DNA of 64,000 bases from Octopus sinensis (lineage: Eukaryota): contig NW_021833458.1 of assembly GCF_006345805.1 (NCBI RefSeq), positions 10,371 through 74,370 of the forward strand, given 5' to 3'. Positions 4,290 to 58,515 of this stretch are shown one piece after another (within the stretch, counting starts at the first letter, position 1; each line of letters opens with the position of its first letter). The notes under the pieces are model-generated. The model was not told the DNA's origin and did not search any database. It saw nothing but the letters and a program-made list of their open reading frames with translations. The position numbers were made by a program, and so were the translations under genes.

Positions 4290-4521
4290 ATATTTCTTTA
4301 CTACCCACAAGGGGTTAAACACAGAGGGGACAAAGAAGGACAGACAAATAGATTAAGTCGATTACATCGACCCCAGCGCGTAACTGGTACTTAATTTATC
4401 GACCCCGAAAGGATGAAAGGCAAAGTCGACCTCGGCGGAATTTGATCTCGGAACGTAACGACAGACGAAATACGGCTACGCATTTCGCCCGGCGTGCTAA
4501 CGTTTCTACCAGCTCGCCGCC
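4290..4521 (-). mobile_element. SINE family B (tRNA-derived; central gcctttcatcctttcggggtcgataaattaagtacc, resembling the MetaSINE domain as I recall it)
   Basis: Full head ggcggcgagctgg..gttagcacgccgggcgaaatgc to tail cccttgtgggtagtaaagaaata; many near-identical copies in the window. Confidence 0.85.
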
Positions 4522-9797: not shown

Positions 9798-10179
9798 AAC
9801 AACAACAATAATAATAATAATGATAATGATGATGATGATAATAATAATAATATTAATATAATTAATAATAATATAATAATATAATAATATAATAATAATA
9901 TAATAAATATAATAATAATAAGAAGAAGAAGAAGAAGAAGAAGAAGAAAGAAGAAGAAGAAGAAAAAGAATTCAAGAACCTTTTGGGCGGGATAGGTTTC
10001 TCAATCTAAAGAAAATTCTAACTGGGCATCACCAGCAAGGTCATGAGACCACCGTGTCGTGCACAAGTCGTTGTTATGCATGTGCCTGGTTACCATTACC
10101 AGATGGGTAGCTAAGATGAGTATACCGGGCTTTGTATATGTTACCCCTAGTGTCATTTTCATGACGTGAAATGCCATCA

Positions 10180-10774: not shown

Positions 10775-11511
10775 GAACGAATAGTGTTATCATGTATATT
10801 GTTTTAGCTTGATCTTATACTGCTACAAACAAACTTCCTGTCTCCCTGTTCATCCTTCCTTCCTTTCTGCAACCTTAAGCATGTCTTACTATTACTCTTT
10901 GCTGCATCTTTTGGAACCTAGCTGCAAAGCCTTCTCCTGCCAGTCAGATAACTTTTGTTCTTCTTTTCTGGTTTTTAACTTCGTTTGGTGTTTTTTGGTT
11001 TTCCTAAGTCTTGCTGTGACTCTATCAGCTCTTAATTTACTTCCTTCACTATTACATACATAAGAGCCTATATTTATTCAAGCTAACTCCACGCAGTCTT
11101 CTGCTAATATTTAACCTCTTCCACCTTCCTTCCTAGGTAAGTATAGTCTTGCTACTCCTGTCTTTGGGCGGAGTCCTCCATTCATATTGAATTCCTTCTT
11201 AGTTCTTCTCTCTAGCTTTGCTAATTCAGGTTTGTCCAATATTCAAAAGCTGCTGAGTATCTAAGTAAGGATACCACCCAAGTATTTACAGCCTTCACTA
11301 GATTCGGACTATTTAGCTTTGACTTCATGTGCTTCCTCACCCTTTTGATATACTCTTCAATTTTCGTTTTCGTGTCTATAGTTAGTACTCTGTCAGATTC
11401 TAATACTTCCAGATGCTTATAAATCTCTCCTTCTTTCAGTGATTATAATGTCTGGTCATCTGGTAACTGGATACCTTCGCTGTCGACTATTTGTCCACTT
11501 TTCCGGACAGA
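10775..11511 (-). pseudogene. R4/Dong-clade LINE RT C-terminal/thumb fragment
   Basis: SEGIQLPD..YKHLEVL..NLVKAVNTWVVSLLRYSA..VARLYLPRKEGGRG..WQEKAL..ETGSLFVAV*DQA. Confidence 0.85.
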
Positions 11512-22154: not shown

Positions 22155-22797
22155 ACACTTTTTAGTCATTTGACTGTGGCCCTGCTGAAGCACCACTTTT
22201 AGTCTAAGAAATCGAACCCAAGACTTATTCTTTGTAAGCCAGGTACTTATTCTAGCGATCTCTTTTACCGAACCGCTAATTTTTGGGGACAGCAACACAC
22301 CAACATCGGTTGTTAAACGATAGGGAAGGTGTGAGAAACACAGACACACAAACATATACATACATACATACATACATACATACATACATACATACATACA
22401 TACATACATACATACATACATTATGGCTGCCCCTTCGTTATCAAGTATAGCCATTGCACGAAGCTTAACTGTTACTGGTGCTGTGATCGAATGTGACTTT
22501 TTAGCCCAGCTAAAGATCTACAATGTCTTGTACAAAATTGGCAACTAAAACCTTTACTGGTAATAGCCAGCTGTAGTTGTAACTGGGCTTCATGTACCTT
22601 TGCATGTCGTTTAAGTCCTCCTGCCGAATTACACTCTCTTCCACATGCCCGACAGATATGATTAGTATGGTGTGTTACAACATCACCAGTGGCCAGGTTG
22701 TCACTTATCTGTCTCGTTTTATGACTACGAAGATGACACATGAGTCCAGCTTTACTGAGGCAGGGTCTTGCAATACATACATACATACATACATACA

Positions 22798-22833
<36 letters not shown>

Positions 22834-23006
22834 CGACGGGCTTTCAGTTTTCGCCTACGAAATCCACTCACAAGGGTTTGATTGGCACAAGGCTATAGTA
22901 GAAAACATTAGACCAAGATGCCACGCAGTGGGACTGAAACAGCAACGGTCTGTGTGTGTGTGTGTGGTGGGGGAGAAAGCTTCTTACCACTCAGCCACGC
23001 CTGCGC
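22155..23006 (-). mobile_element. SINE family A interrupted by an RTE-like LINE fragment
   Basis: Tail half 22155-22355, head half 22829-23006. Confidence 0.8.
22421..22772 (-). mobile_element. 5'-truncated RTE-like LINE 3' end encoding C2H2-like zinc fingers
   Basis: CRACGRECNSAGGLKRHAKVH and CQFCTRHCRSLAGLKSHIRSQH*; 3' hairpin cttcgt..acgaag; (TATG)n tail; same tail at 25745-25799 (+). Confidence 0.7.
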
Positions 23007-34909: not shown

Positions 34910-37279
34910 ATATATATATATATATTATATATATATATATGATTTATAAATATATGTATCTGTATCAATCTCTGTTTATTTTCTCTTATTCCTTTTTGTT
35001 GAAGACTGTAGTCTCGAAGCGTGAAAGGCATTAAATTTTTCCGAGTACCAAGCTAATAAACGTGCGTGTTGTTCGTACATCTGCCTTCGTCTTTCGTTTT
35101 TCTATAAATTTCAAATGTCTATGAATATATTTGTATTTATATGTGTATATAAATTCACACACAAGGAAATACATACATGAATATATATATATATATAATC
35201 TAAATTCAACTTACGTTGAAAGTCAACAAAGTTTGCTTTAGAAACGTTGAGATTCGAACTCACATCCGTGTGATTACGCGTTTACCATTAATATAAACTA
35301 GCCAGCAACAAATTCTTCTGCAATTTCAGGATATATAAATCTAGCTTTATGAGACCACTTGACGTGTAATCACAGGAATGTGAGTTCGACTTTCATGGCT
35401 GGCCGCCGACAGATTTGTCTGCAAAATATCGTTAGTGTGTGTGTGTGTGTGTGTGTGTCTATGTGTGTGTATGTGTTGTGTGTGTTTGTGTGTGTGTGCG
35501 TGTGTCTTTGTGTCTGTGTTTTCCTGACCACCACCTTCGCTTGACAACCGATGTTGGTATGTTTACGTCCCCGGCAAAAGACACCGATGGAAGAAGTCCC
35601 AAGCTTCCAAAAAATTTGCTGCGATCAAATTACTGAAACAAGTAAAATAATTTTTTAAATAGTAACGAATAAAAGAATATATATGCACATACATACATAA
35701 GTACGTACATACATACGTACATAATTACATACATACATACATACATTTCTCTTGCTTGTACATCACGCAACGTTGTCTCCATCGAATACTCTTCTGCTGC
35801 AAGTTGACGCATCCATATATTTTATTCTTCTAATAAAGTTATAAAACCTTGCTTTTCGATAGCAACTGTGTGGAAAATATAATTTATATTCATGAAAATA
35901 CATTTAAATTTATTTGAATATTTTAGTTGTATCACGTTGAATATTATTAAAACAAAAAAAAAAAAAACACTTGCTGTTTTTATTTATGTATTTATTAGTA
36001 GACATCAGACAGTTATCACACTGTGAAAGATAAATTTTAAAACGAAGATACATTAAAGTAATAACAGCTATAATTTTATAGTTTGTTACCAACAAAAGTA
36101 TCTGGAACACAAGTACCGACGTACTGTAGTTTTCTAATATTTATGTGTTGACAAGTAAAAATGATTTATTATATTACGCAAAGAACAATTAATATAACGA
36201 ATATATCTCATGGTGAAATGTTTCTTTATTGAATACTTGCGAACTTGGATTTCTACAAGTAAACCTTACGAAGGTGTTTACATTTATTTTTCTTTGTTGG
36301 CTTTGATTTCGAGAGCAGACATTTTGGTTTTTGGCTTATTGTCTTTTTCTTGTTTCACTTATTATTCTGCGGCCCAAACTGGGCCTGCCGTTGAAGTGTT
36401 TAGCCAAAGGTAGCGATCCGAGGACTTATTTTGTTGTTGTTGTTTTTTCATTCTGTTACGTAACTTGTTGGTCTCTCAACTGATATATTAAGGGGACATA
36501 ATTGTTCATCAAAAGAAAAAAGATCCTGGTTGTTAAGCGGTTATATATATATATATTTCGTTTTTGGATTTGGTTTGCAAGATTCTTTATGTGAATTCGT
36601 GTGTTGAATCATATTCTGTTGTGGTCTGGGGAGAGCCATTCTCCTTTTAGTGCCTTGTAACTTAACACACTCACCGGTAAAATTTCCACTTATTTTCTTC
36701 TTTTCTGAAATTTTCTGAAATTTTCGTTGCGTCTTGCAACCTTTTCAATAGAATCAAAACTATTGAAAAGGTTGGAAGATGCAATGAACATTTAAGAAAA
36801 ATAAAGAAGTAAATGAGTGGAAATTTTACCGGTGAGTGTGTTAAATTATAAGACACTAACAGAGAATGACTCTCGCCAGACACAACAGTGTCTATATATA
36901 TATATATATATATAACATTTCACGACGCATTAAGCAGTGATTGATGAAAAAGTTTCACCCGCTCCTTATTAAATAATAAAACTCCATTCAAAAGATATTT
37001 TAACTATGTGCCCTCCATTTTTATATATAAATTCGGTTAAAATGATAATATCTTAATTGCATAATTGTGGAATTTATGATGTTGATTGCTAAAGAAATAG
37101 GTGATGAGCGTAATTAAATAATGAAACATTTGTGAAATTGTTGCTTTTCTGTCTTTAATGTATGCGCACATACATATACATATATGTGTGTATTCATATA
37201 TACACACACCTATGAATACATGTATAAAATAAGTATATTTATATATACATGTTCAAGATATATGTATGTTTCAAATTTT

Positions 37280-37480
37280 GGCGAAAGGCCAGCGATTTCG
37301 AGGGTGGAAGTAAGGCGATTACATTATTGAGCCCCCCAGTGCTCAGCTGGTATTTATTATTCTGCCCCAAAAGGTTGAAAAGCAAAGTCGACCTCGACGG
37401 AATTTGAACTCAGGACGTAAAGACCGAAGAAATACCACAAAGCATTTCGCCCAACGTGCTAACGTTCCTGCCAGCTCGCT
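37280..37480 (-). mobile_element. SINE family B, diverged
   Basis: aaagtcgacctcgacggaatttgaactcagg..ccagctcgc. Confidence 0.7.
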
Positions 37481-37784
37481 TTACACACACAAATAGAAAC
37501 ATCAACACGCACATTCATCCAGTCACATACACGCGCAGAAGGCATATTCCTTCTACCGTTTTGGCATTCTTTCCTGGGAAATATCATCGAACGAGTACAT
37601 TCGTACGCTGGTAGGTGATGATTTCAGCGGGATTTAGCAACTCTTTCTTGCAAATCGCCTGGCCACGTCGAGATTGTCATGTTCTCTGGATACAATGGGA
37701 AGAATAGTGACAAACACCACCTCAAACACATACACATATACACCGGAATCAATAGCAATAGCTTAATATGAGCGCTGCCAGCAC

Positions 37785-37828
37785 TGCTACTACTACAATT
37801 ACTACTACTACTACTACTACTACTACTG

Positions 37829-37870
<42 letters not shown>

Positions 37871-37919
37871 ATAATAATAATAATAATAATAGTACTGCTG
37901 CTGCTGTTGCTACTAATAT

Positions 37920-37963
<44 letters not shown>

Positions 37964-38191
37964 TTACTACTGCTGCTGCTGCTGCCACCACTTCTGTTAC
38001 TGATTATGCTATTGCTTCTACTATTACTACTACTGCTGCTACTACTACTACTACGAGTACTACTACTACTACTATTACTATTACTCCCATGGAAAAAGAT
38101 CGTGAGAGTTATGATCATGTAGACGATGGTGATGATGACGACGACGACAACAACGACGACGGCGACGACGATGACGATGATGATGGTGATA

Positions 38192-38279
<88 letters not shown>

Positions 38280-38769: not shown

Positions 38770-39150
38770 AAGCGGTGAGCTGGCGGAAAAGGTTAGCACG
38801 CCGGGTGAAATGCTTAGCGGTATTTCGTCTGTCTTTACGTTCTGAGTTCAAATTCCGCCGAGGTCGACTTTGCCTTTCATCCTTTCGGGGTCGATAAATT
38901 AAGTACCAATTACGCACTGGGGGTCGATATAATCGACTTAATCCGTTTGTCTGTCCTTGTTTGTCCTCTCTGTGTTTAGCCCCTTGTGGGTAGTAAAGAA
39001 ATAGGTCTTTCGTCTGCCGTTACGTTCTGAGTTCAAATTCCGCCGAGGTCGACTTTGCCTTTCATCCTTTCGGGGTCGATAAATTAAGTACCAGTTACGG
39101 ACTGGAGTCAATATAATCGACTTAATCCGTTTGTCTCTCCTTGTTTGTCC
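38770..39150 (+). mobile_element. SINE family B partial tandem dimer
   Basis: Body repeated from ttcgtctg.. after aaagaaatagg. Confidence 0.85.
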
Positions 39151-39380
39151 TCTCTGCGGTGCTCCAGCATGGCCGCAATCAAATGACTGAAAGAGATAAA
39201 AGAATAAAAGAAACTTACATACATATGTATGTACAGGGAGGGAAACAGAATTTACATTGATAAACACGTACAAACATACATATACACAGATATATGTATA
39301 TACATACATACATACATGTATAGATGTGTACGTGTGTGTACATATATACAAATATATATACATATAAGATATATATATAT

Positions 39381-39421
<41 letters not shown>

Positions 39422-39700
39422 CGTATATATTTCTATTTGTGTGTTTGTATGCATGTATGTGGATTTCTATGTAATTATCTGCTGTGAGCTTCTTTCTTCA
39501 TCGCTATGTTCTACTCTATCTATGCAAATATATTTTCAAACACGTTTCTAGAAATACAACAATTAACTTATAAGTGAAATTAGTTCTTCTCTTTGCACAC
39601 AAGCCCATCGACACACACAGGCACTCACACGTACTCACACATATGCACGCACACACACGTATGTGTGTGAGCTGCAAAACACAAAACTCTCTTGTTAACA

Positions 39701-42700
39701 GTTGATCGAATTTTTGCTAGTGGAGAGTTGATCGAATTTGCACAAGTAGACGGTTGATCGAATTTTCGCTAGTGGACACTTGATCGAATTTTGGCTAGTG
39801 GACAGTTGATTGAATTTGCACAAGAGGACAATTGATCGAATTTGCACAAGCAGACAGTTGATCGAATTTGCACAAAAGAACAGTTGATCGAATTTGCACA
39901 AGTGGACAGTTGATCGAATTTTAGCTAGTTAATCGAATTTTCACCAGTGTACAGTTGATAGAATTTTCGCGATTTGGACAGTTGATCGAATTTTCGCTAG
40001 TGGACAATTGATCGAATTTGCACGAGTGGACAGTTGATCGAATATTCAATAGTGGACAGTTGATCGAATTTGCACCAGTGGACAGTTGATCGAATTTTTG
40101 CTAATAGAGAGTCGATCGAATTTTAGCTAGTGGACAGTTGATCGAATTTTCGCGAGTGGACAGTTGAACGAATTTTCGCTCGTGGACATTTAATCGAATT
40201 TGCACAAGTGGACAGTTGATCGAATTTGCACAAGTAGACAGTTGATCGAATATTCGCTAGTGGACAGTTGATCGAATTTGCACAAGTGGACAGGTGATCG
40301 AATTTTAGCTAATGGACAGTTAATCGAATTTTCACCCGTGGACAGTTGATCGAATTTTCGCTAGTGGACAGTTGATCGAATTTTCACGAGTGGACACTTG
40401 ATAGAATTTTCGCTAATGGACAGTTGATCGAATTTTCACTTGTGAACAATTGATCGAATTTGCACAAAAGGACAGTTGATCGAATTTGCACCAGTGGACA
40501 GTTGATCGAATTTTTGCTAATAGAGAGTCGATCGAATTTTAGCTAGTGGACAGTTGATCGAATTTTCGCGAGTGGACAGTTGAACGAATTTTCGCTCGTG
40601 GACATTTAATCGAATTTGCACAAGTGGACAGTTGATCGAATTTGCACAAGTAGACAGTTGATCGAATATTCGCTAGTGGACAGTTGATCGAATTTGCACA
40701 AGTGGACAGGTGATCGAATTTTAGCTAATGGACAGTTAATCGAATTTTCACCCGTGGACAGTTGATCGAATTTTCGCTAGTAGACAGTTGATCGAATTTT
40801 CACGAGTGGACACTTGATAGAATTTTCGCTAGTGGACAGTTGATCGAATTTTCACTTGTGAACAATTGATCGAATTTGCACAAAAGGACAGTTGATCGAA
40901 TTTGCACAAGTGGACAGTTGTTTCAATATTCAATAGTGGACAGTTGATCGAATTTTCGCTAGTGGACAGTTGATGGAATTTCCACCAATGGAGAGTAGAT
41001 CGAATTTTAGCTGGGGGACAGTTGATCGAATTTTCACCAGTGGACAGTGATCGAATTTTCGCTTGTGAACAATTGATCGAATTTGGACAAGTGGACAGTT
41101 GATCGAATTTACACGAGTGGACAGTTGATCGAATTTTCGCTAGTGGACGTTTGATCGAATTAGCACAAATGGACAATTGATCGAATTTGAACAAGTGGAC
41201 AGTTGATCGAATTTGCACAACTGAACAGTTGATCGAATAACCAATAGTGGACAGTTGATCGAATTTCCTACCAATGGACAGTTGATCGAATTTTAGCTAA
41301 TGGCCAGTTGACCGAATTTTCACCAGTGGACAGTAGATCGAATATTCGCTAGTGGAATATTCGCAGTGGACAGTTCATTGAATTTAAGCTAATTGACAGT
41401 TGATCGAATTTCCACCAATGGACAGTTGATCGAATTTTAGCTGGGGGACAGTTGATCGAATTTTCACCAGTTGACAGTTGATCGAATTTTCGCTAGTGGA
41501 CAGTTGATCGAATTTTCGCTAGAGGACAATTGATCGAATTTGCACAAGTGGACAGTTGATCGAATTTGCAGAATTGGACAGTTGATCGAATTTACACAAG
41601 TGGTCAGTTGATCGAATATTCGCTAGTGGTCAGTTGATCGAATTTGCACCAGTGGACAGTTCATTGAATTTAAGCTAATTGACAGTTGATCGAATTTTCA
41701 CAAGTGGACAGTTGATCGAAATTTCGCTTGTGGACAATTGATCGAATTTTCGCTTGTGAACAATTGATCGAATTTGCACAAGTGATAGTTGATCGAATTT
41801 ACACAAGTGGACAGTTGATCGAATAATCAATAGTGGACAGTTGATCGAATTTCCACCAATGGACAGTTGATCGAATTTTAGCTGGGGGACAGTTGATCGA
41901 ATTTTCACCATTGGACAGTTGATCGAATTTTCGCTAGTGGACAGTTGATCGAATTTTCGCTAGTGGACAATTGATCGAATTTGCACAAGTGGACAGTTGA
42001 TCGAATTTGCAAAAGTGGACAGTTGATCAAATTTACACAAGTGGTCAGTTGATCGAATATTCGCTAGTGGACAGTTGATCGAATTTGCACCAGTGGACAG
42101 TTCATTGAATTTAAGCTAATTGACAGATGATCGAAATTTCGCTTGTGGACAATTGATCGAATTTGCACAAGTGGACAGTTGATCGAATTTGCAAAAGTGG
42201 ACAGTTGAACAAATTTACACAAGTGGTCAGTTGATCGAATATTCGCTAGTGGACAGTTGATTGAATTTGCACCAGTGGACAGTTGATCGAATTTTCGCGA
42301 TGTGGACAATTGATCGAATTTTCGCTAGTGGACGGTTGATCGAATTTGCACAAGTGGACAATTGATCGTATTTGTACAAGTGGACAGTTGATCGAATATT
42401 CGCTAGTGGACAGTTGATCGAACTTGCACCAGTGGACAGTTGATCGAATTTTAGCTAATGGACAATTGATCGAATTTTCACCAGTGGACAGTAGACCGAA
42501 TATTCGCTAGTGGACAGTTGATCGAATTTCCACCAATGGACAGTTGGTCGAATTTTAGCTGGGGGACAGTTGATCGAATTTTCACCAGTGGTCAGTTGAT
42601 CGAATTTTCGCTAGTGGACAGTTCATCCAATTTTCGCTAGAGGACAATTGATCGAATTTGCACAAGTGGACAGTTGATCGAATTTGCAGAAGTGGACAGT

Positions 42701-43440
42701 TGATCGAATTTTACACAAGTGGTCAGTTGATCGAATATTCGCTAGTGGACAGTTGATCGAATTTTCACAAGTGGACAGCTGATTGAATTTTCGCTTGTGG
42801 ACAATTGATCGAATTTGCACAAGTGGACAGTTGATCGAATATTCAATAGTGGACAGTTGATCGAATTTTCACCAGTGGACAGTTGATCGAATTTTAGCTT
42901 GCGGACAGTTGATCGAATCTTCACCAGTGGACAGTTGATCGAATTTTCGCTAGTGGACAGTTGATCGAATTTTCGCTAGTTGACAATTGATCGAATTTGC
43001 TTTAGTGGACAGTTGATCGAATATTCAATAGTGGACAGTTGATCGAATTTGCACCAGTGGAGAGTTGATCGAATTTTAGCTTGTGGACAGTTCATCGAAT
43101 TTGCACCAGTGGACAGTTGATCGAAGTTTTTCTAATGGACAGTTGATCAAATTTTCGCAGTGGACAGTTGGTCGAATTTGCACAAGTGGACAGTTGATCG
43201 AATTTACAGAATTGGTCAGTTGATCGAATATTCGCTAGTGGACAGTTGATGGAATTTGCACCAGTGGACAGTTCATCGAATTTTAGCTAATGGACAGTTG
43301 ATCGAATTTTCGCTAGTGGACAGTTGATTGAATTTTCCCTAGTGGACCTTTGATAGAATTTTCGCTAGTGGACAGTTGACTTAATTTTCAGTTGTGGACA
43401 CTTGATCGAATTTTCACAAGTGGACAGTTGATCGAATTTG
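39701..43440. repeat. 26-bp satellite, about 144 units, consensus GTTGATCGAATTT(G/T)CNCNAGTGGACA
   Basis: Invariant gttgatcgaat every 26 bp; 416-bp (16-unit) block duplicated at about 40066 and 40482. Confidence 0.97.
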
Positions 43441-43445
43441 CTCCC

Positions 43446-45125
43446 TGTTATGTCGTACATTCGGATTCTTTCTACTCAACTCGACTCCTCTCTACACCTC
43501 TCTCACATTTAGACCTCTCCCTCTATATCTACGTAATAGGATAGCTTATTTCATCGTCTGGTGGCGTCCACACAACACCTCCACCTTTTGAGCTTTTAAA
43601 TCCTGAATTAATCAATTTTATTTCCTCTGTGAGAAACCGGCATATCTTTTTTCTCTTAGCGTTAATTTCCATCATTTCTGTAGATTTTCTCTTCCTGTTC
43701 GACCTACGTGTCAGTTCTGCTTTTGCTTGTGGTTCTGGGTCCTCGAACACTTTTTCTTGTGGTTCTGGGAACTGGAACAAATCATACCATAAATCTATTC
43801 TTCTCGTCTCTCTTGGTTTTTGGTATATCTTTTTTTAATTGGTTTAAATCCATTCTGTGTTCATATTTTGGTCCTTTTACCATGTACATCACGTTACCCA
43901 GACGTCCAGTTACACTTCCTTCTTCCCTGTCCTGTTTTCTGTTACTATATATTTTAAAATACTCTTTGTCACCTGTATTTTTAAAAAATTCATTTTTCTT
44001 CCCTATTTTCTGCTCGGCAACCATTTGTCAGAAATAAAACGATAAAGATAAAACAGGTTTTAACTTTAAAGGGGCAATCTTTCCTCAAATGTCGATCTCC
44101 GCAACCGTAGCACTGTTTTGAATTAAAATTTTTCCTTCTTTCTGTACTCTCTTTACACATTTGTACATTATTATTCTTGTCTTCTGTCTTTCTTGTTTCA
44201 TCGTGGAGGTCTATTATTTGTTGACATTCCTAAGCCACATTCTGCAAATGAGTTTCACATCTTGATTCAACTTTGATAAAATTCTTTTTCTAATTTCCGC
44301 GTCTTCCGTTGCCACTAGCCGTTTAACGAATATTAAGTACTTGAACATATCTGGCGTTAATTCTTCCAGCTTAAACATTTCGCTAGCCTTATTAACCATA
44401 CCGGCATATGTTAAGATATCATCGGGCTCGTTTCTCTTTAAATTTAAACATTCCCATCGAATATTAAACAGCGAAAGTTTCTCGCTAAAAATATTAGTCA
44501 AAATATTTATCGTTTCATCAAAACACATTTCCGCGGGCATTCTCGGCAAAATAAAGTTACAAAATCTTTCGTGTTCCGGATTAGCAATATTTTGCAAAAG
44601 GAGCCTTACCTTCCTTTCACTAGGCCATCCTCTGCATTCCTCTCGGAATATGTCTTCGTATCGTCTGTAATATGCAGCAAACGTAATTTCTTCATCCGGA
44701 TTGTAGTGAAATTCTTCGATGGAATTTGCAACACCATCTGCTGAAAATGATTCTACCGTTTTTCTCGACTGCAGTAACAATTCTATTAAATTCTGTAGTT
44801 GTTGTTGCTGCTGCTGTTGTTGTTTTACAACTGCTTTCAGTAACTCTTCCATTTCGGTACTATTCGAAACCACGTCACCACTGTTATATCGCAAGACTAC
44901 ACAATGGCTGTGTGAGCTACGAATTCCTCGTCGCCACTCTTATATCGCAATACTACACAGTGGCTGTGTGAGCTACGAAATCCTCGTCGCCCTCGTCATG
45001 TCGCACGTTCAGATGCCTTCTACTCAACTCGACTCCTCTCTACTCGTCTCTCATGTCTAAGCTTCTCCCAAGATATCTACATATTGGACTAGACTACTTC
45101 ATCGTCTGGGGGCCTCCACAAAACA
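43446..45125 (-). mobile_element. Internally deleted Gypsy (Mag-like) LTR retrotransposon
   Basis: LTRs 43446-43577 and 44993-45125; PPT aaaaggtggagg abutting the 3' LTR; PBS tggcgacgagga; gag, CX2CX3HX4C knuckle and integrase C-terminal tail; no PR, RT or RH. Confidence 0.9.
44214..44852 (-). pseudogene. gag: Gag of the Mag-like Gypsy element (frameshift near 44250; knuckle CYGCGDRHLRKDC at 44074-44112)
   Basis: EITFAAYYRRYEDIF..KVRLLL..FSEKLSLFNIRWECLNL..YAGMVNKASEMFKL..DAEIRKRILSKL. Confidence 0.85.
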
Positions 45126-45899
45126 CTCTTGTGAACAGTTGATCGAATCAATTTCTGTTTGTGTGTTTGTATGCATGTATGTGGGTTTCTATGTAATTAT
45201 CTGCTGTGAGCTTCTTTCTTCATCGTTATGTTCTACTCTATCTATGCATATACATTTTCAAACACGTTTCTAGAAATACATCCATTAACTTAGAAGTGAA
45301 ATTAGTTCTTCTCTTTGCACACAAGCCCATCGACATACACATGCATTCGTGTGTGTGCGTGCATGTGTGTGTGTGTATGTATTCTTCACTGCTTTCTTCT
45401 CTGTATCCAGTATTAGTTTTCCTACCGTTATATTTTTCTTTTTACTCTTTGAGGAACATGTCAGACTCATTTCTTTTTCTAGCAATTTCTAACTTCAACC
45501 CCATCTCACAGACTCACGGACGCACAAATTTGTTTGCATGTATTCTGCTGTAAAAACAGAATAAAATAACAGAAAAACAAATTGAAAGAGCGAAGCATGT
45601 AAAAGAACTTTCCATGCGGCTCATTTTACGTAAGAAACTCATTATATATCTAACTACAACCATATGCTTCATATGACCTGAACGACGGAGAAAGATCTTT
45701 TTTCGGGTAATCTAGGAAGCAGAAGTTATGTGAAGAATTGCATCGCTGCTGAACCTTGCACATTACTGTGGACAAGGAGTCTTGTTTACAGATTTTGTGT
45801 AAATAAATTGTGTAGAAGCATGAAGTTATTTCAACATGCATGTTTGTACTCCAGTATAATATGGTGTAATTACTTGTACAGATTTATATATATATATAA

Positions 45900-46221: not shown

Positions 46222-46245
46222 CTAAATATATATTATATATACATA

Positions 46246-46293
<48 letters not shown>

Positions 46294-46403
46294 TATATAA
46301 ATTACACGTAGATAATAAAACGTAAGCTATGTTATATACATTCAGACAGACACACATGTATGTATGTACATACGTATATCTATACATGCATGTGTGTATG
46401 TTT

Positions 46404-46409
<6 letters not shown>

Positions 46410-46490
<81 letters not shown>
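46410..46490. repeat. (GT)n microsatellite
   Basis: About 40 pure GT units. Confidence 0.95.
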
Positions 46491-46495
<5 letters not shown>

Positions 46496-46698
46496 TTACC
46501 CACTGGAATTATATCTTCAAGAGAAAATAAAACAATTGGAGATTCGAAAAAGTGGATAATTTCATCTCCAACAAGCTCGCACACGTGCCTAACATTCGCA
46601 CAACATGATCATGTATATTCAGGTGTATGTGTATGTATATATATATATATGCAGAGAGAGAAAGTGAGAGTGATGCATAGATATTTAGATAGATGAAG

Positions 46699-46759
<61 letters not shown>

Positions 46760-47463
46760 AGATATGTGTGTGTGTATACACACACACGCACACGTGCACA
46801 CACACACGCATATATATATATGTATGTATATACATATATATGTGTGTGTGTGTATATATATATGTATATATATACATATATATACACACACACATATATA
46901 TACACACATATATATATATACATATATATATACACACACACATATATATATATACATGCATATATATATATACGTAGATAGATAGATAGATAGATAGATA
47001 GAGAGAGAGGGAGAGAGAGAGAGAGATGGGTAGTTAGATGGAGAAATATATGTATGAAAAGATATACATGTACGTGTCTATATATGTGTGTATGTGCGTG
47101 TGTGTTCCTGCGTGCGTGTGTGGCGTGTGCGGGTGTATGTGTATATCTATATATGTATGTATATGTGTGCAAATCGAGGGAGATATAGAGTAAGATAGAG
47201 AGAGATAGAAAGAGAGGGGGAAAAGAAGCCAGTTTTCACACATAGTATATTACCATACACAGTTGATACATATATTTTAGATGCGTGGATACGTTTGTAT
47301 TGCTAACCAAGCTTGAATATCCAAGTAGAATATAGTTAAAATTGAAGTTATATTCATATACAGAGTATAACTTTGTGCTTCATAATTCAAATAAATACGG
47401 TCTCTCTTTTTTTTCTCTCTCTCACTCTCTCTTTTTTCTGATGTCTTATCATTCTTCCAACAG

Positions 47464-48072: not shown

Positions 48073-48623
48073 CAGTAATCCCTCGACTATCGCGGGTGCT
48101 ATGTTCCAAAACGCCCCGTGATAAATGAAAATCTGCGAAGTAGGAACAGTACAGTATTTTTTATTTTTTTATTCAGCTCAGAGCTGCGGCCATGCTGATG
48201 CACCGCCGTTTGCTTTTCGTATGCAAGCCGGTGGGGCTCGCTCTGAGCACTCTAATTTTTTCACAGTGAACGTACCCACCGCCTCGGACACTCGGCGAAG
48301 AGCACGTTCGGAGGAACCGTGCGGGCCGAAACGACCGGGAGGTGGACGCGCTACTACCGCAACGCGAACGGCGACTCCCGACGATGCGCCTGCCTCGTGG
48401 CTCCCGTGCGCGCAGCACCGACCTGCGCGACGTGAAATCGGACGAAACGCGCGGGCGAAGACAAGGCAGGGCGGCGGCCGACGCGGCGGCCGACGCGGCG
48501 GCGATGCGCGCAGTGCTCCGCGGCCCGATTTGTTACAAATGCAAAACAACACCACGGAGGAATCAACGTATGCTTAAATAATAAACCCTGATAGGTGAAC
48601 CACGATATAGCTAGGAATTACTG
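48073..48623. mobile_element. pogo/Tigger-like MITE with a GC-rich interior
   Basis: Imperfect TIRs cagtaatccctcgactatcgcg / cacgatatagctaggaattactg, followed by TA; related end fragment at 62205-62270. Confidence 0.7.
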
Positions 48624-57484: not shown

Positions 57485-57543
57485 GCATATATATATTATA
57501 TATATATATATATATATTATATTATATATATATTATATATATA

Positions 57544-57576
<33 letters not shown>

Positions 57577-57627
57577 TATGTATATTATATCTATATATTA
57601 TGTAATATAGATATATATTATAGTATG

Positions 57628-57667
<40 letters not shown>

Positions 57668-57674
57668 GTATTAT

Positions 57675-57705
<31 letters not shown>

Positions 57706-57857
57706 AATATGTATATATATATATATATATGTATATATATAGATATATATATATATGTATATATAGATATATGTATATATATATATATATGTATATAATA
57801 TATATATATGTATATATATGTATATATATTATGTATATATATATATGTATATATGTA

Positions 57858-57897
<40 letters not shown>

Positions 57898-58459
57898 TAT
57901 ATTATATATATGTATATAATATATATATGGATATAATATAATATATATATGTATTATCTATATATATGTATATATATATATATGTGTATATATATATATT
58001 ATATGTGTATATATATATAGATAATATTAGTATATATATAATATGTGTTATATATATATATAATGTATAATATATACTATGGTGTATATATATATATATA
58101 TGTATATATATATAGATGTTATTATATATATATATATATATGATATATATATATGTTATATATATATAATATTGTATGATATATTATAGATGTATATATA
58201 TATATATCGTATATATATATATAAGTATATATATATATGTATATCTATAATATATAGTATATGTATATATATATATGTATATGTATATATATATATGTAT
58301 ATGTATATATATTATGTATATGTATGTAATATATATATATTATGTATATGTATATCTATATATATATGTATATATATATGTATATTATATGTATCGATAT
58401 ATGTATATATATATGTATATATATATGTATATAATATGTATATATATATGTAATATATA

Positions 58460-58512
<53 letters not shown>

Positions 58513-58515
58513 ACG
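57485..58515. repeat. ~1-kb degenerate (AT)n/(ATGT)n array
   Basis: Direct reading. Confidence 0.95.

Follow-up and report, generated by a model that had tools for sequence, protein, structure and literature searches.

A satellite array with a dead LTR retrotransposon, flanked by duplicate 198-bp sequences in Octopus: a block that may have been copied and inserted as a unit

In the genome of Octopus sinensis, a 5.5-kb block that consists of a 26-bp satellite array and a dead long terminal repeat (LTR) retrotransposon is flanked on either side by a copy of a 198-bp local sequence, here called A. Both ends of the block are formed by the same retrotransposon/satellite junction (J1 on the left, J2 on the right). 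This layout raises the question of whether the block came to this site from elsewhere and, if so, from what kind of template. A sequence-only reading of the window (the whole 64-kb stretch of DNA analyzed here) had noted the flanking repeats, the junction copies, and the divergence of the LTRs, and all three observations are borne out by re-measurement. The anatomy of the locus, the insertion of the element into the satellite, the copying of its junction, and the relative ages of these parts can be read directly from the DNA. The two copies of A and their immediate surroundings are as follows.

39342..39417, unstranded: (TA)n microsatellite (TRF, period 2, 38.5 copies), ending 11 bp before A1 begins
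39429..39626, plus strand: A1, left copy of the 198-bp flanking direct repeat, 94.4% identical to A2, gap-free
39627..39663, unstranded: m1, imperfect CA-rich microsatellite between A1 and the block (from the sequence)
45149..45150, unstranded: CA, two bases that separate the block from A2, untemplated or unassigned (from the alignment)
45151..45348, plus strand: A2, right copy of the 198-bp flanking direct repeat, 94.4% identical to A1, gap-free
45349..45385, unstranded: m2, TG-rich microsatellite directly after A2 (from the sequence)

The direct repeats had been described as 191 bp long, and positions 39429-39619 and 45151-45341 do differ at exactly 9 of 191 sites; the ungapped match reaches 39626 and 45348, giving 198 bp with 11 differences (94.4% identity, K2P of 0.058) and a mixed transition/transversion spectrum. 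A begins with ATTTCT and ends with GCA(C/T)TC. The 5-mers outside the pair differ (TATAT on the left, GTGTG on the right), leaving no short target-site duplication (TSD). On the block side, A1 is adjoined by the CA microsatellite and A2 by the satellite; J2 is separated from A2 by 2 nt, and 37 nt of microsatellite and a 16-nt patch separate A1 from J1. The m1 sequence could be part of the target or filler. Upstream of A1 there are only the (TA)n tract and SINE sequence, with no J or LTR. An open reading frame crossing A2 into the right flank has no match among predicted proteins (exact look-up and homology search). The inverted match between m1 and m2 (86% over 37 nt) was considered as a sign of fold-back repair and rejected, as its score and E-value are in the ordinary range for CA/TG microsatellites. 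No terminal inverted repeats or LINE-type poly(A) ends were found at the block, and an Rfam search returned sub-threshold matches on microsatellites only.

The sequence-only reading had raised the possibility that A is a common dispersed repeat. No third copy was found in the 64-kb window or in 24 kb from two other Octopus loci (word size of 7, E ≤ 10). These 88 kb represent a small share of the genome, making this a weak test, by which A does not appear to be a frequent dispersed repeat.

The left part of the block is occupied by the satellite.

39698..43439, unstranded: 26-bp satellite array of ~143 units, consensus ACAGTTGATCGAATTTTCACTAGTGG (TRF)

The array comprises 143.6 copies with 78% matches and has no counterpart elsewhere in the window; the spacing between units is 26 nt in 130 of 141 intervals. 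It contains young internal duplications of 416 bp (~100% identity) and 441 bp (96 to 98%), the former of which indicates later in-place turnover. A search for the pattern GGACAGTTGATCGAATTT in JGI metagenome contigs yielded 20 single chance matches in microbial contigs and no arrays. The pattern had no matches in IMG/VR viral contigs, and the satellite open reading frame had none among predicted proteins.

The retrotransposon lies within this satellite and has the following parts.

43441..43445, unstranded: CTCCC, putative TSD copy on the 3'-LTR side of the element, a 3/5 match to CTCTT
43446..43577, minus strand: 3' LTR, 132 nt, TG...CA on the minus strand
43578..43589, minus strand: polypurine tract AAAAGGTGGAGG, directly upstream of the 3' LTR (from the sequence)
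43532..44939, minus strand: decayed coding region in four different frames (open reading frames, Pfam, and DNA match to the L002 locus)
44865..44991, minus strand: 56-bp tandem repeat, 2.3 copies, containing a motif resembling a primer-binding site (PBS) (TRF)
44994..45125, minus strand: 5' LTR, 132 nt

From its ends and coding remnants, the element, which is on the minus strand, is identified as an LTR retrotransposon of the Ty3/gypsy type that has decayed and suffered internal deletion. Read on that strand, its LTRs have the form TGTT...ACA, with the end of the 5' LTR mutated to ACG. The LTRs are 78% identical, with 29 differences over the gap-free 132-nt pair (22.0%, K2P of 0.26), in agreement with the earlier estimate of about 22%. 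A PBS-like motif, GGGCGACGAGG, is located at 44982-44992, 1 nt from the LTR; its equivalent in an O. sinensis relative (locus L001) is TGGCGACGAGG, also 1 nt after the LTR. The window contains no tRNA genes. The coding region retains gag with a DUF7083 domain at 44214-44894 (Pfam E = 9e-19), a CCHC knuckle at 43990-44160, and a remnant of the integrase C terminus at 43785-44027. The window copy lacks protease, RT, RNase H, and the integrase core, and the RT domain proper was not seen in any of the element copies examined. A search with gag retrieved homologues at two octopus loci, L001 and the Octopus bimaculoides locus L002. The latter shows the domain order RT_RNaseH_2, Integrase_H2C2, and rve, and its positions 2178-2585, downstream of the rve domain, match positions 43605-44040 of the element at the DNA level. 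Neither the satellite nor A is present at these two loci.

Both flanks of the element are satellite units, and removing the element together with 5 bp restores the exact 26-nt register and anchor spacing. Thus, the element was inserted into a pre-existing 26-bp satellite. The two copies of the putative 5-bp TSD (CTCCC and CTCTT) match at only 3 of 5 positions, 5 bp being the length that restores the register. Derivation of the satellite from the 3' untranslated region of the element was rejected, given the relatives that lack the satellite and the register restored on excision. Also rejected was an apparent homology upstream of the two LTRs (AAATTGATT); this match straddles the A2/satellite junction and shows no extension.

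The insertion left a junction that recurs at the far end of the block.

39664..39679, minus strand: x, 16-nt patch TTTTGCAGCTCACACA, resembling the PBS-adjacent element segment TTTCGTAGCTCACACA (44965-44980)
39680..39688, minus strand: LTR part of J1, the first 9 nt of the 5' LTR copied at 8/9 (LTR boundary set by the O. sinensis relative, L001)
39689..39711, unstranded: satellite unit of J1 with CTCTT, the same target-site copy as in J2 (1 mismatch in 23 against the J2 unit)
45117..45148, unstranded: J2, the original insertion junction, comprising the last 9 nt of the LTR, CTCTT (45126-45130), and the remainder of one satellite unit

J1 (39680-39711) and J2 (45117-45148) are identical at 30 of 32 positions, just as the sequence-only reading had counted. 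Its description of the junction as an LTR terminus plus a satellite unit needs qualification: both are present, but the LTR contributes only 9 nt, and the other 23 nt are a satellite unit carrying the target-site copy of the element. Among 142 satellite units, J1 is the sole one within 2 mismatches of J2 (8 in the runner-up); over the 9 nt that come from the LTR, it has a single mismatch, against at least 5 in all other units. Within the block, CTCTTGT and CACAAAAC are confined to J1 and J2, and 9-mers with at most 1 mismatch to CACAAAACA occur in the window at a frequency of 3e-4 per position. The 23-nt flank of J2 has up to 2 mismatches to four array units. The x patch, which adjoins the LTR 9-mer, aligns locally at 14 of 16 positions, a score reached by just 2% of CA/TG-microsatellite control windows (p ~0.02).

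Since the element was inserted into the satellite and its excision restores the register, J2 is a one-off insertion junction and J1 is its copy. The junction is specific to this insertion, as the O. sinensis relative does not adjoin this satellite. Because J1 copies this unique junction and is accompanied by the patch resembling PBS-adjacent sequence, the block represents slightly more than one period of the satellite plus the element.

The K2P distances are 0.058 for A, 0.066 for J, and 0.26 for the LTRs. A and J are therefore similar in age (~6%), at roughly a quarter of the LTR age, with the J figure based on 2 differences in 32 nt. With LTRs 22% diverged against ~6% for A and J, and with the element demonstrably inside the satellite, the composite predates the later event, as had been proposed. 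The similar ages of J and A would fit a single event comprising the block insertion and the duplication of A. A has a period of 5722 and J a period of 5437, so that the repeats are nested and out of phase. The resulting order, A[J...J]A, is the layout predicted for an insertion with target duplication, which supports such an origin; A would then be a target duplication made in the same event.

The reading that we prefer, at a probability of about 0.5, is that a satellite-plus-element block, slightly longer than one period, was copied and inserted with duplication of A. A Ty3/gypsy-type LTR retrotransposon, now dead and internally deleted, hit a 26-bp satellite array in the Octopus genome long ago. 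The stretch copied later would have been slightly longer than one period: it would have begun at the PBS/LTR edge in one copy of the element, taken in the satellite and a complete element, and stopped 23 nt past the LTR of the latter. The template was probably a repeated satellite-plus-element unit, either a tandem higher-order repeat or a circle. The copy would have been placed in unique AT-rich DNA, where A is closely preceded by (TA)n and followed by a CA/TG microsatellite, and 198 bp of the target would have been duplicated in the same event. This duplication fits equally well with the fill-in of a staggered break, possibly with two nicks ~200 to 250 bp apart, and with a replicative template switch that left the locus after A and re-entered it at the start of A. 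Since then, unequal exchange would have kept the array turning over at this site. Several features sit poorly with this scenario. A target duplication of 198 bp is unusually long, the 37 nt of m1 make the left junction unclean, and the putative TSD of the element is imperfect. The LTR part of J1 is short and the x patch only modestly separated from the microsatellite controls, the agreement in age depends on two differences, and the metagenome and viral contigs searched hold no second satellite locus.

The template might have been an extrachromosomal circle that arose when satellite units on the two sides of the element recombined; a rolling-circle copy, or one of slightly more than one turn, would then have been joined into a staggered break. 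The 32-nt terminal redundancy and the 16-nt patch are expected from reading past the origin of a circle, and the divergence of J (2/32) equals that of A (11/198), in line with J1 and J2 having been identical at insertion. Satellite-derived extrachromosomal circular DNA (eccDNA) is documented in other animals and has been proposed as a dispersal route (PMC7403614, PMC11610590, PMC7719264). However, a block that starts and ends alike is equally predicted by a young linear tandem repeat of the satellite and the element, which unequal exchange, clearly active in this array, would readily make. No circle-closing junction is identifiable inside the array, and reported eccDNA-type satellite insertions carry 2- to 10-bp duplications rather than 198 bp (PMC7719264). 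A circular template thus seems doubtful. Of the earlier interpretation, the pre-existing composite and its copying over slightly more than one period stand, but the circle is a candidate template only, as a linear tandem repeat leaves the same footprint. Rather unlikely is the fuller version, in which a satellite-retrotransposon circle was copied by rolling-circle replication and the copy re-integrated in the germline to give the block, the 32- to 48-nt redundancy represents read-through past the origin, and the 198 bp mark two nicks at the microsatellites near the ends of A.

An origin in place, with satellite and element native to the site, is also unlikely. Unequal exchange would have duplicated the satellite plus the element, followed by deletions and a small duplication of A, with no insertion from elsewhere. 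Local segmental duplication is demonstrable in the array, the microsatellites next to A are prone to rearrangement, and no donor was found in the metagenome contigs, viral contigs, and predicted proteins searched. However, this course needs at least three independent events with coinciding endpoints, including a deletion that stopped exactly at the start of the A1 flank and a block left precisely in the interval bounded by the A copies. Under a simple tandem duplication (period of 5722), J or the element is predicted upstream of A1; the (TA)n and SINE sequence found there and the unequal periods of A and J speak against it.

The resemblance of A1 and A2 to a young LTR pair (direct terminal repeats of ~200 bp, 94% identity, noncoding cargo) would suggest a larger nonautonomous LARD/TRIM-like element with the satellite and the old retrotransposon as cargo and with copies elsewhere. 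However, A lacks TG...CA termini and a short TSD, no PBS-like TGG motif is present inside A1 or A2 on either strand, there is no polypurine tract, the 88 kb of octopus DNA hold no further copy, and the J1/J2 redundancy would be left without a reason, all of which makes this origin very improbable. An assembly artefact, i.e., a collapsed satellite whose flank was duplicated through a mis-join or gap-fill, is suggested by the error-prone assembly of such arrays but hardly credible. Flanks duplicated by artefact normally come out near-identical, whereas 11 of 198 sites differ between A1 and A2, with mixed transitions and transversions; J1 and J2 have diverged too, and the structure is internally coherent.

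Events of this kind have been described in other genomes. Dispersed euchromatic satellite clusters, such as Rsp-like/1.688 in Drosophila (Sproul et al. 2020, PMC7403614) and the Cast satellites of Tribolium (PMC11610590), move as mixed higher-order units, for which eccDNA reintegration or FoSTeS/MMBIR template switching has been proposed (PMC7403614, PMC11610590). As in those clusters, the octopus array and an unrelated repeat travel as a unit, common descent is marked by the re-use of a specific hybrid junction, and unequal exchange brings later expansion. In contrast to them, the octopus passenger is an LTR retrotransposon rather than a second satellite, and the case is a single locus with a 198-bp flanking duplication, known from sequence alone. 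Alpha-satellite repeats in human euchromatin are likewise accompanied by duplicated insertion-site sequence at unique sites; those duplications of 2 to 10 bp were read as homology used for recombination, with eccDNA as the proposed vehicle (Feliciello et al. 2020, PMC7719264). The octopus duplication is 198 bp long and shows no evident microhomology, with two unassigned bases (CA) at the right junction and a 16-nt templated-looking patch at the left one.

FoSTeS/MMBIR templated insertions at the junctions of short tandem duplications, reported mainly from human germline and cancer rearrangements (PMC5120786), also place a segment from elsewhere between two short local duplicates, with small templated patches at the junction. 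The octopus block differs in being known without its donor, so that copying and cut-and-paste are not separable. Finally, Ty3/gypsy LTR retrotransposons are found nested in satellite arrays, and plant satellites often stem from tandem repeats internal to such an element (Vondrak et al. 2020, PMC7004042). In octopus, too, an LTR element in a tandem array has become part of the repeating unit, but the satellite predates the element, as the register restored on excision indicates, and the relatives of the element lack it. Dispersal of mixed satellite clusters by eccDNA or template switching has thus already been proposed for flies, beetles, and humans (PMC7403614, PMC11610590, PMC7719264) and is not a new idea; the octopus block is a circumstantially documented case of a known kind of event, the copying and insertion of a repeat block.

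At present, the case amounts to a single anecdotal locus in a genome rich in repeats, and its concept has been published before. The arrival of satellites at new chromosomal sites has been argued mostly from indirect signs such as eccDNA blots, shared junctions, and microhomology. Here, a datable one-off marker, the retrotransposon insertion junction, is located at both ends of the insert and between copies of the duplicated target, which makes the locus a clean natural experiment and could let the event be dated in the octopus phylogeny. A donor with a single period would imply a circle, the alternative donor being a tandem higher-order repeat. If the circular reading is true, the block would be a footprint, at the level of sequence, left by satellite dispersal through eccDNA in a cephalopod.

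The locus lies in AT-rich, eukaryotic DNA dense in microsatellites. It consists of a block, made up of a 26-bp satellite array and a decayed LTR retrotransposon, enclosed by two copies of a direct repeat, A1 and A2, with an LTR/satellite junction (J1 or J2) at each end of the block.

Features of the locus, left to right on the plus strand
39342-39417, (TA)n microsatellite
39429-39626, A1, left copy of the direct repeat
39627-39663, m1, CA-rich microsatellite
39664-39679, x, 16-nt patch
39680-39711, J1, left junction
39698-43439, 26-bp satellite, about 143 units
43446-45125, minus strand, LTR element
45117-45148, J2, right junction
45149-45150, two bases, CA
45151-45348, A2, right copy of the direct repeat
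from 45349, m2, TG-rich microsatellite

The sequence-only reading had counted 9 differences between flanking repeats of 191 bp, which is exact; without gaps, the match reaches 198 bp, over which A1 and A2 are separated by 6 transitions and 5 transversions, 11 differences in all (K2P distance, 0.058). The junction recurs at both ends of the block as claimed, J1 and J2 being identical at 30 of 32 positions. These repeats are nested as A[J...J]A and do not share a period, that of A being 5722 and that of J 5437. Such an arrangement is what an insert shows when it carries terminal redundancy of its own and lies between copies of duplicated target sequence.

The LTR element is read on the minus strand. 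Its boundaries follow from an alignment of the two LTRs to an O. sinensis relative (L001): each LTR is exactly 132 nt long, begins with TGTT(T/G/A)TGTGGA, and ends with CGACATAACA. The gap-free alignment of the two contains 29 differences (K2P, 0.26), in agreement with the earlier estimate of about 22% divergence. A PBS-like motif, TGGCGACGAGG (in the window, GGGCGACGAGG), starts 1 nt past the LTR, and the purine tract AAAAGGTGGAGG adjoins the 3' LTR. The coding part is split over four frames and retains gag, a CCHC knuckle, and an integrase-region remnant, which matches L002, a relative from O. bimaculoides, downstream of its integrase core; no protease, RT, RNase H, or integrase core remains. 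The sole protein signal in the block is a gag-like ORF (44214-44894, minus strand; Pfam DUF7083, E = 9e-19), whose closest database relatives are uncharacterised proteins of O. bimaculoides (78% identity) and O. sinensis (83%); these relatives place the window in an octopus. The domain order in L002, RT_RNaseH_2, Integrase_H2C2, and rve, is typical of Ty3/gypsy elements. This assignment is likely rather than proven, because none of the copies examined showed an RT domain proper. A 56-bp segment with the PBS-like motif is present in 2.3 tandem copies (44865-44991). This duplication seems to be a trait of the element family, because L001 also holds about 1.3 copies (positions 9840-9940).

Satellite units adjoin the element on both flanks, and the 23 nt to its right have at most two mismatches to four units of the array. 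When the element is removed together with one 5-bp target copy (putative duplication CTCCC/CTCTT, 3 of 5 matching), the GATCGAAT anchors return to their 26-nt spacing. The element was thus inserted into the satellite. Because the register is restored in this way and the O. sinensis relative does not lie beside the 26-bp satellite, the satellite predates the element and does not belong to its family. J2, composed of 9 nt of LTR end, CTCTT, and the remainder of a satellite unit, is thus a scar left by a single integration event.

J1 reproduces this scar: it keeps 8 of the 9 LTR bases, its CTCTT is identical, and the remainder of its unit differs by a single change. Among 142 satellite units, it alone lies within two mismatches of J2, the runner-up having 8; the 9-nt LTR part has at least five mismatches in every other unit, and within the block CTCTTGT and CACAAAAC are found only in J1 and J2. 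An independent second integration could not yield an identical unit variant together with an identical target copy. Directly past the 9 LTR bases of J1 lies the patch x, which on the minus strand reads TTTTGCAGCTCACACA and matches TTTCGTAGCTCACACA of the element at 14 of 16 positions; a score this high is reached by only 2% of control windows taken from microsatellites. In an intact element copy, the matched segment lies immediately after the PBS, 136 nt deeper into the element. Because x matches this PBS-adjacent segment beside J1, the block seems to start, on its left, at the edge of another copy of the element, with 136 nt skipped. The block as a whole covers one period (5437 bp) plus 32 to 48 nt of a template of repeating satellite-plus-element units.

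Divergence is 0.058 for A and 0.066 for J, where only 2 differences were counted; both values are about a quarter of that of the LTRs (0.26), consistent with a single event that created both pairs long after the element had integrated. The best-supported mechanism is copy-and-insert, in which a repeating satellite-plus-element template would have been copied and inserted, with 198 bp of putative target duplicated alongside. The insertion proposed in the sequence-only reading is upheld in part: the composite predates the event, the copy extends over more than one period, and the nested repeats fit insertion with putative target duplication. Its circular template is one of two options, the sequence being compatible with either a circle or a linear tandem higher-order repeat produced by unequal exchange. 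The similar ages of J and A lean slightly towards a template whose J copies were identical at the time of the event, such as a circle or a tandem repeat of very recent origin, and weakly so, because the sample is only 32 to 48 nt. The target might have been duplicated by fill-in of two nicks some 200 to 250 bp apart, which is plausible because alternating purine-pyrimidine tracts lie near both A ends. Alternatively, replication might have left the locus after A by a FoSTeS/MMBIR-like template switch, continued along the donor, and returned to where A begins. Either error-prone joining or template switching could account for the 16-nt patch and the two unassigned bases, CA, found at the junctions.

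No further copy of A turned up in the window or in 24 kb of octopus DNA from other loci, which speaks weakly against a dispersed repeat. A simple tandem duplication predicts J or an LTR upstream of A1, where only (TA)n and SINE copies are found. The LARD-like and DNA-transposon readings fail because A has no TG...CA ends, adjoining PBS or PPT, or short outer duplication, and inverted termini are lacking from the block.

Unequal exchange continues to remodel the array in place, as it has since the proposed insertion, judging from two internal duplications that are very young: a 416-bp segment of 16 units (40096-40460 versus 40512-40876; about 100% identity) and a 441-bp segment (41396-41837 versus 41837-42278; 96 to 98%). 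The present array length therefore need not equal the inserted length.

Several other features were noted in the window. A tRNA-SINE-like repeat, presumably an abundant octopus SINE, is found just upstream of A1 in two tandem copies (38819-38972 and 39004-39156; 94 to 95% identical, 185 bp apart), with an inverted partner at 37353-37466 and many more copies across the window, marked by the translated motif RNWYLIYRPRKDERQSRPRRNLNSERNGRRNTA, among them those near 4352, 18072, 22987, 52284, 52627, and 56229. An inverted match between 39633-39669 and 45338-45374, 86% over 37 nt and involving the microsatellites that follow A1 and A2 (m1 and m2), scores like ordinary CA/TG microsatellite matches and is treated as chance; it could also mark a fold-back step. 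Unusually long simple repeats include (ACT)x101 followed by (GAC)/(GAT) runs at 37783-38279 and a 1-kb tract of (AT)x530 at 57487-58513. The many Rfam matches to microRNA families (mir-297, mir-466, mir-3149, and others) are all below threshold and all on TA/CA microsatellites (36690-37230, 39250-39370, and 46230-47170), and were rejected as low-complexity hairpin artefacts. A GC-rich island at 48100-48600, amid DNA of 30 to 38% GC, includes 2.7 copies of GCGGCGGCCGAC and partly overlaps a SINE-like motif; it may be a promoter of the CpG-island-like kind or a first exon. Short ORF fragments at 22475-22843 and 11224-11442 (both minus strand), which by eye show a C2H2 zinc-finger-like pattern and sequence resembling a LINE reverse-transcriptase tail, are probably remnants of other transposable elements.

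The 26-bp satellite has no second occurrence elsewhere within the window. Its pattern matched no viral contig and, among metagenome contigs, gave only isolated chance matches; at the protein level, look-ups of a satellite ORF and of the ORF that crosses from A2 into the flank on its right returned no match. The literature searched contained no satellite study in cephalopods. Mixed satellite clusters have been proposed to move as higher-order units in Drosophila (PMC7403614) and Tribolium (PMC11610590), as has human alpha satellite (PMC7719264). In these cases, the hybrid junctions that are shared act as markers, and the route suggested is reintegration of eccDNA or template switching. In contrast to these cases, the host here is a cephalopod, an LTR element travels as the passenger and its integration scar provides the marker, and the flanking duplication is 198 bp rather than 2 to 10 bp.
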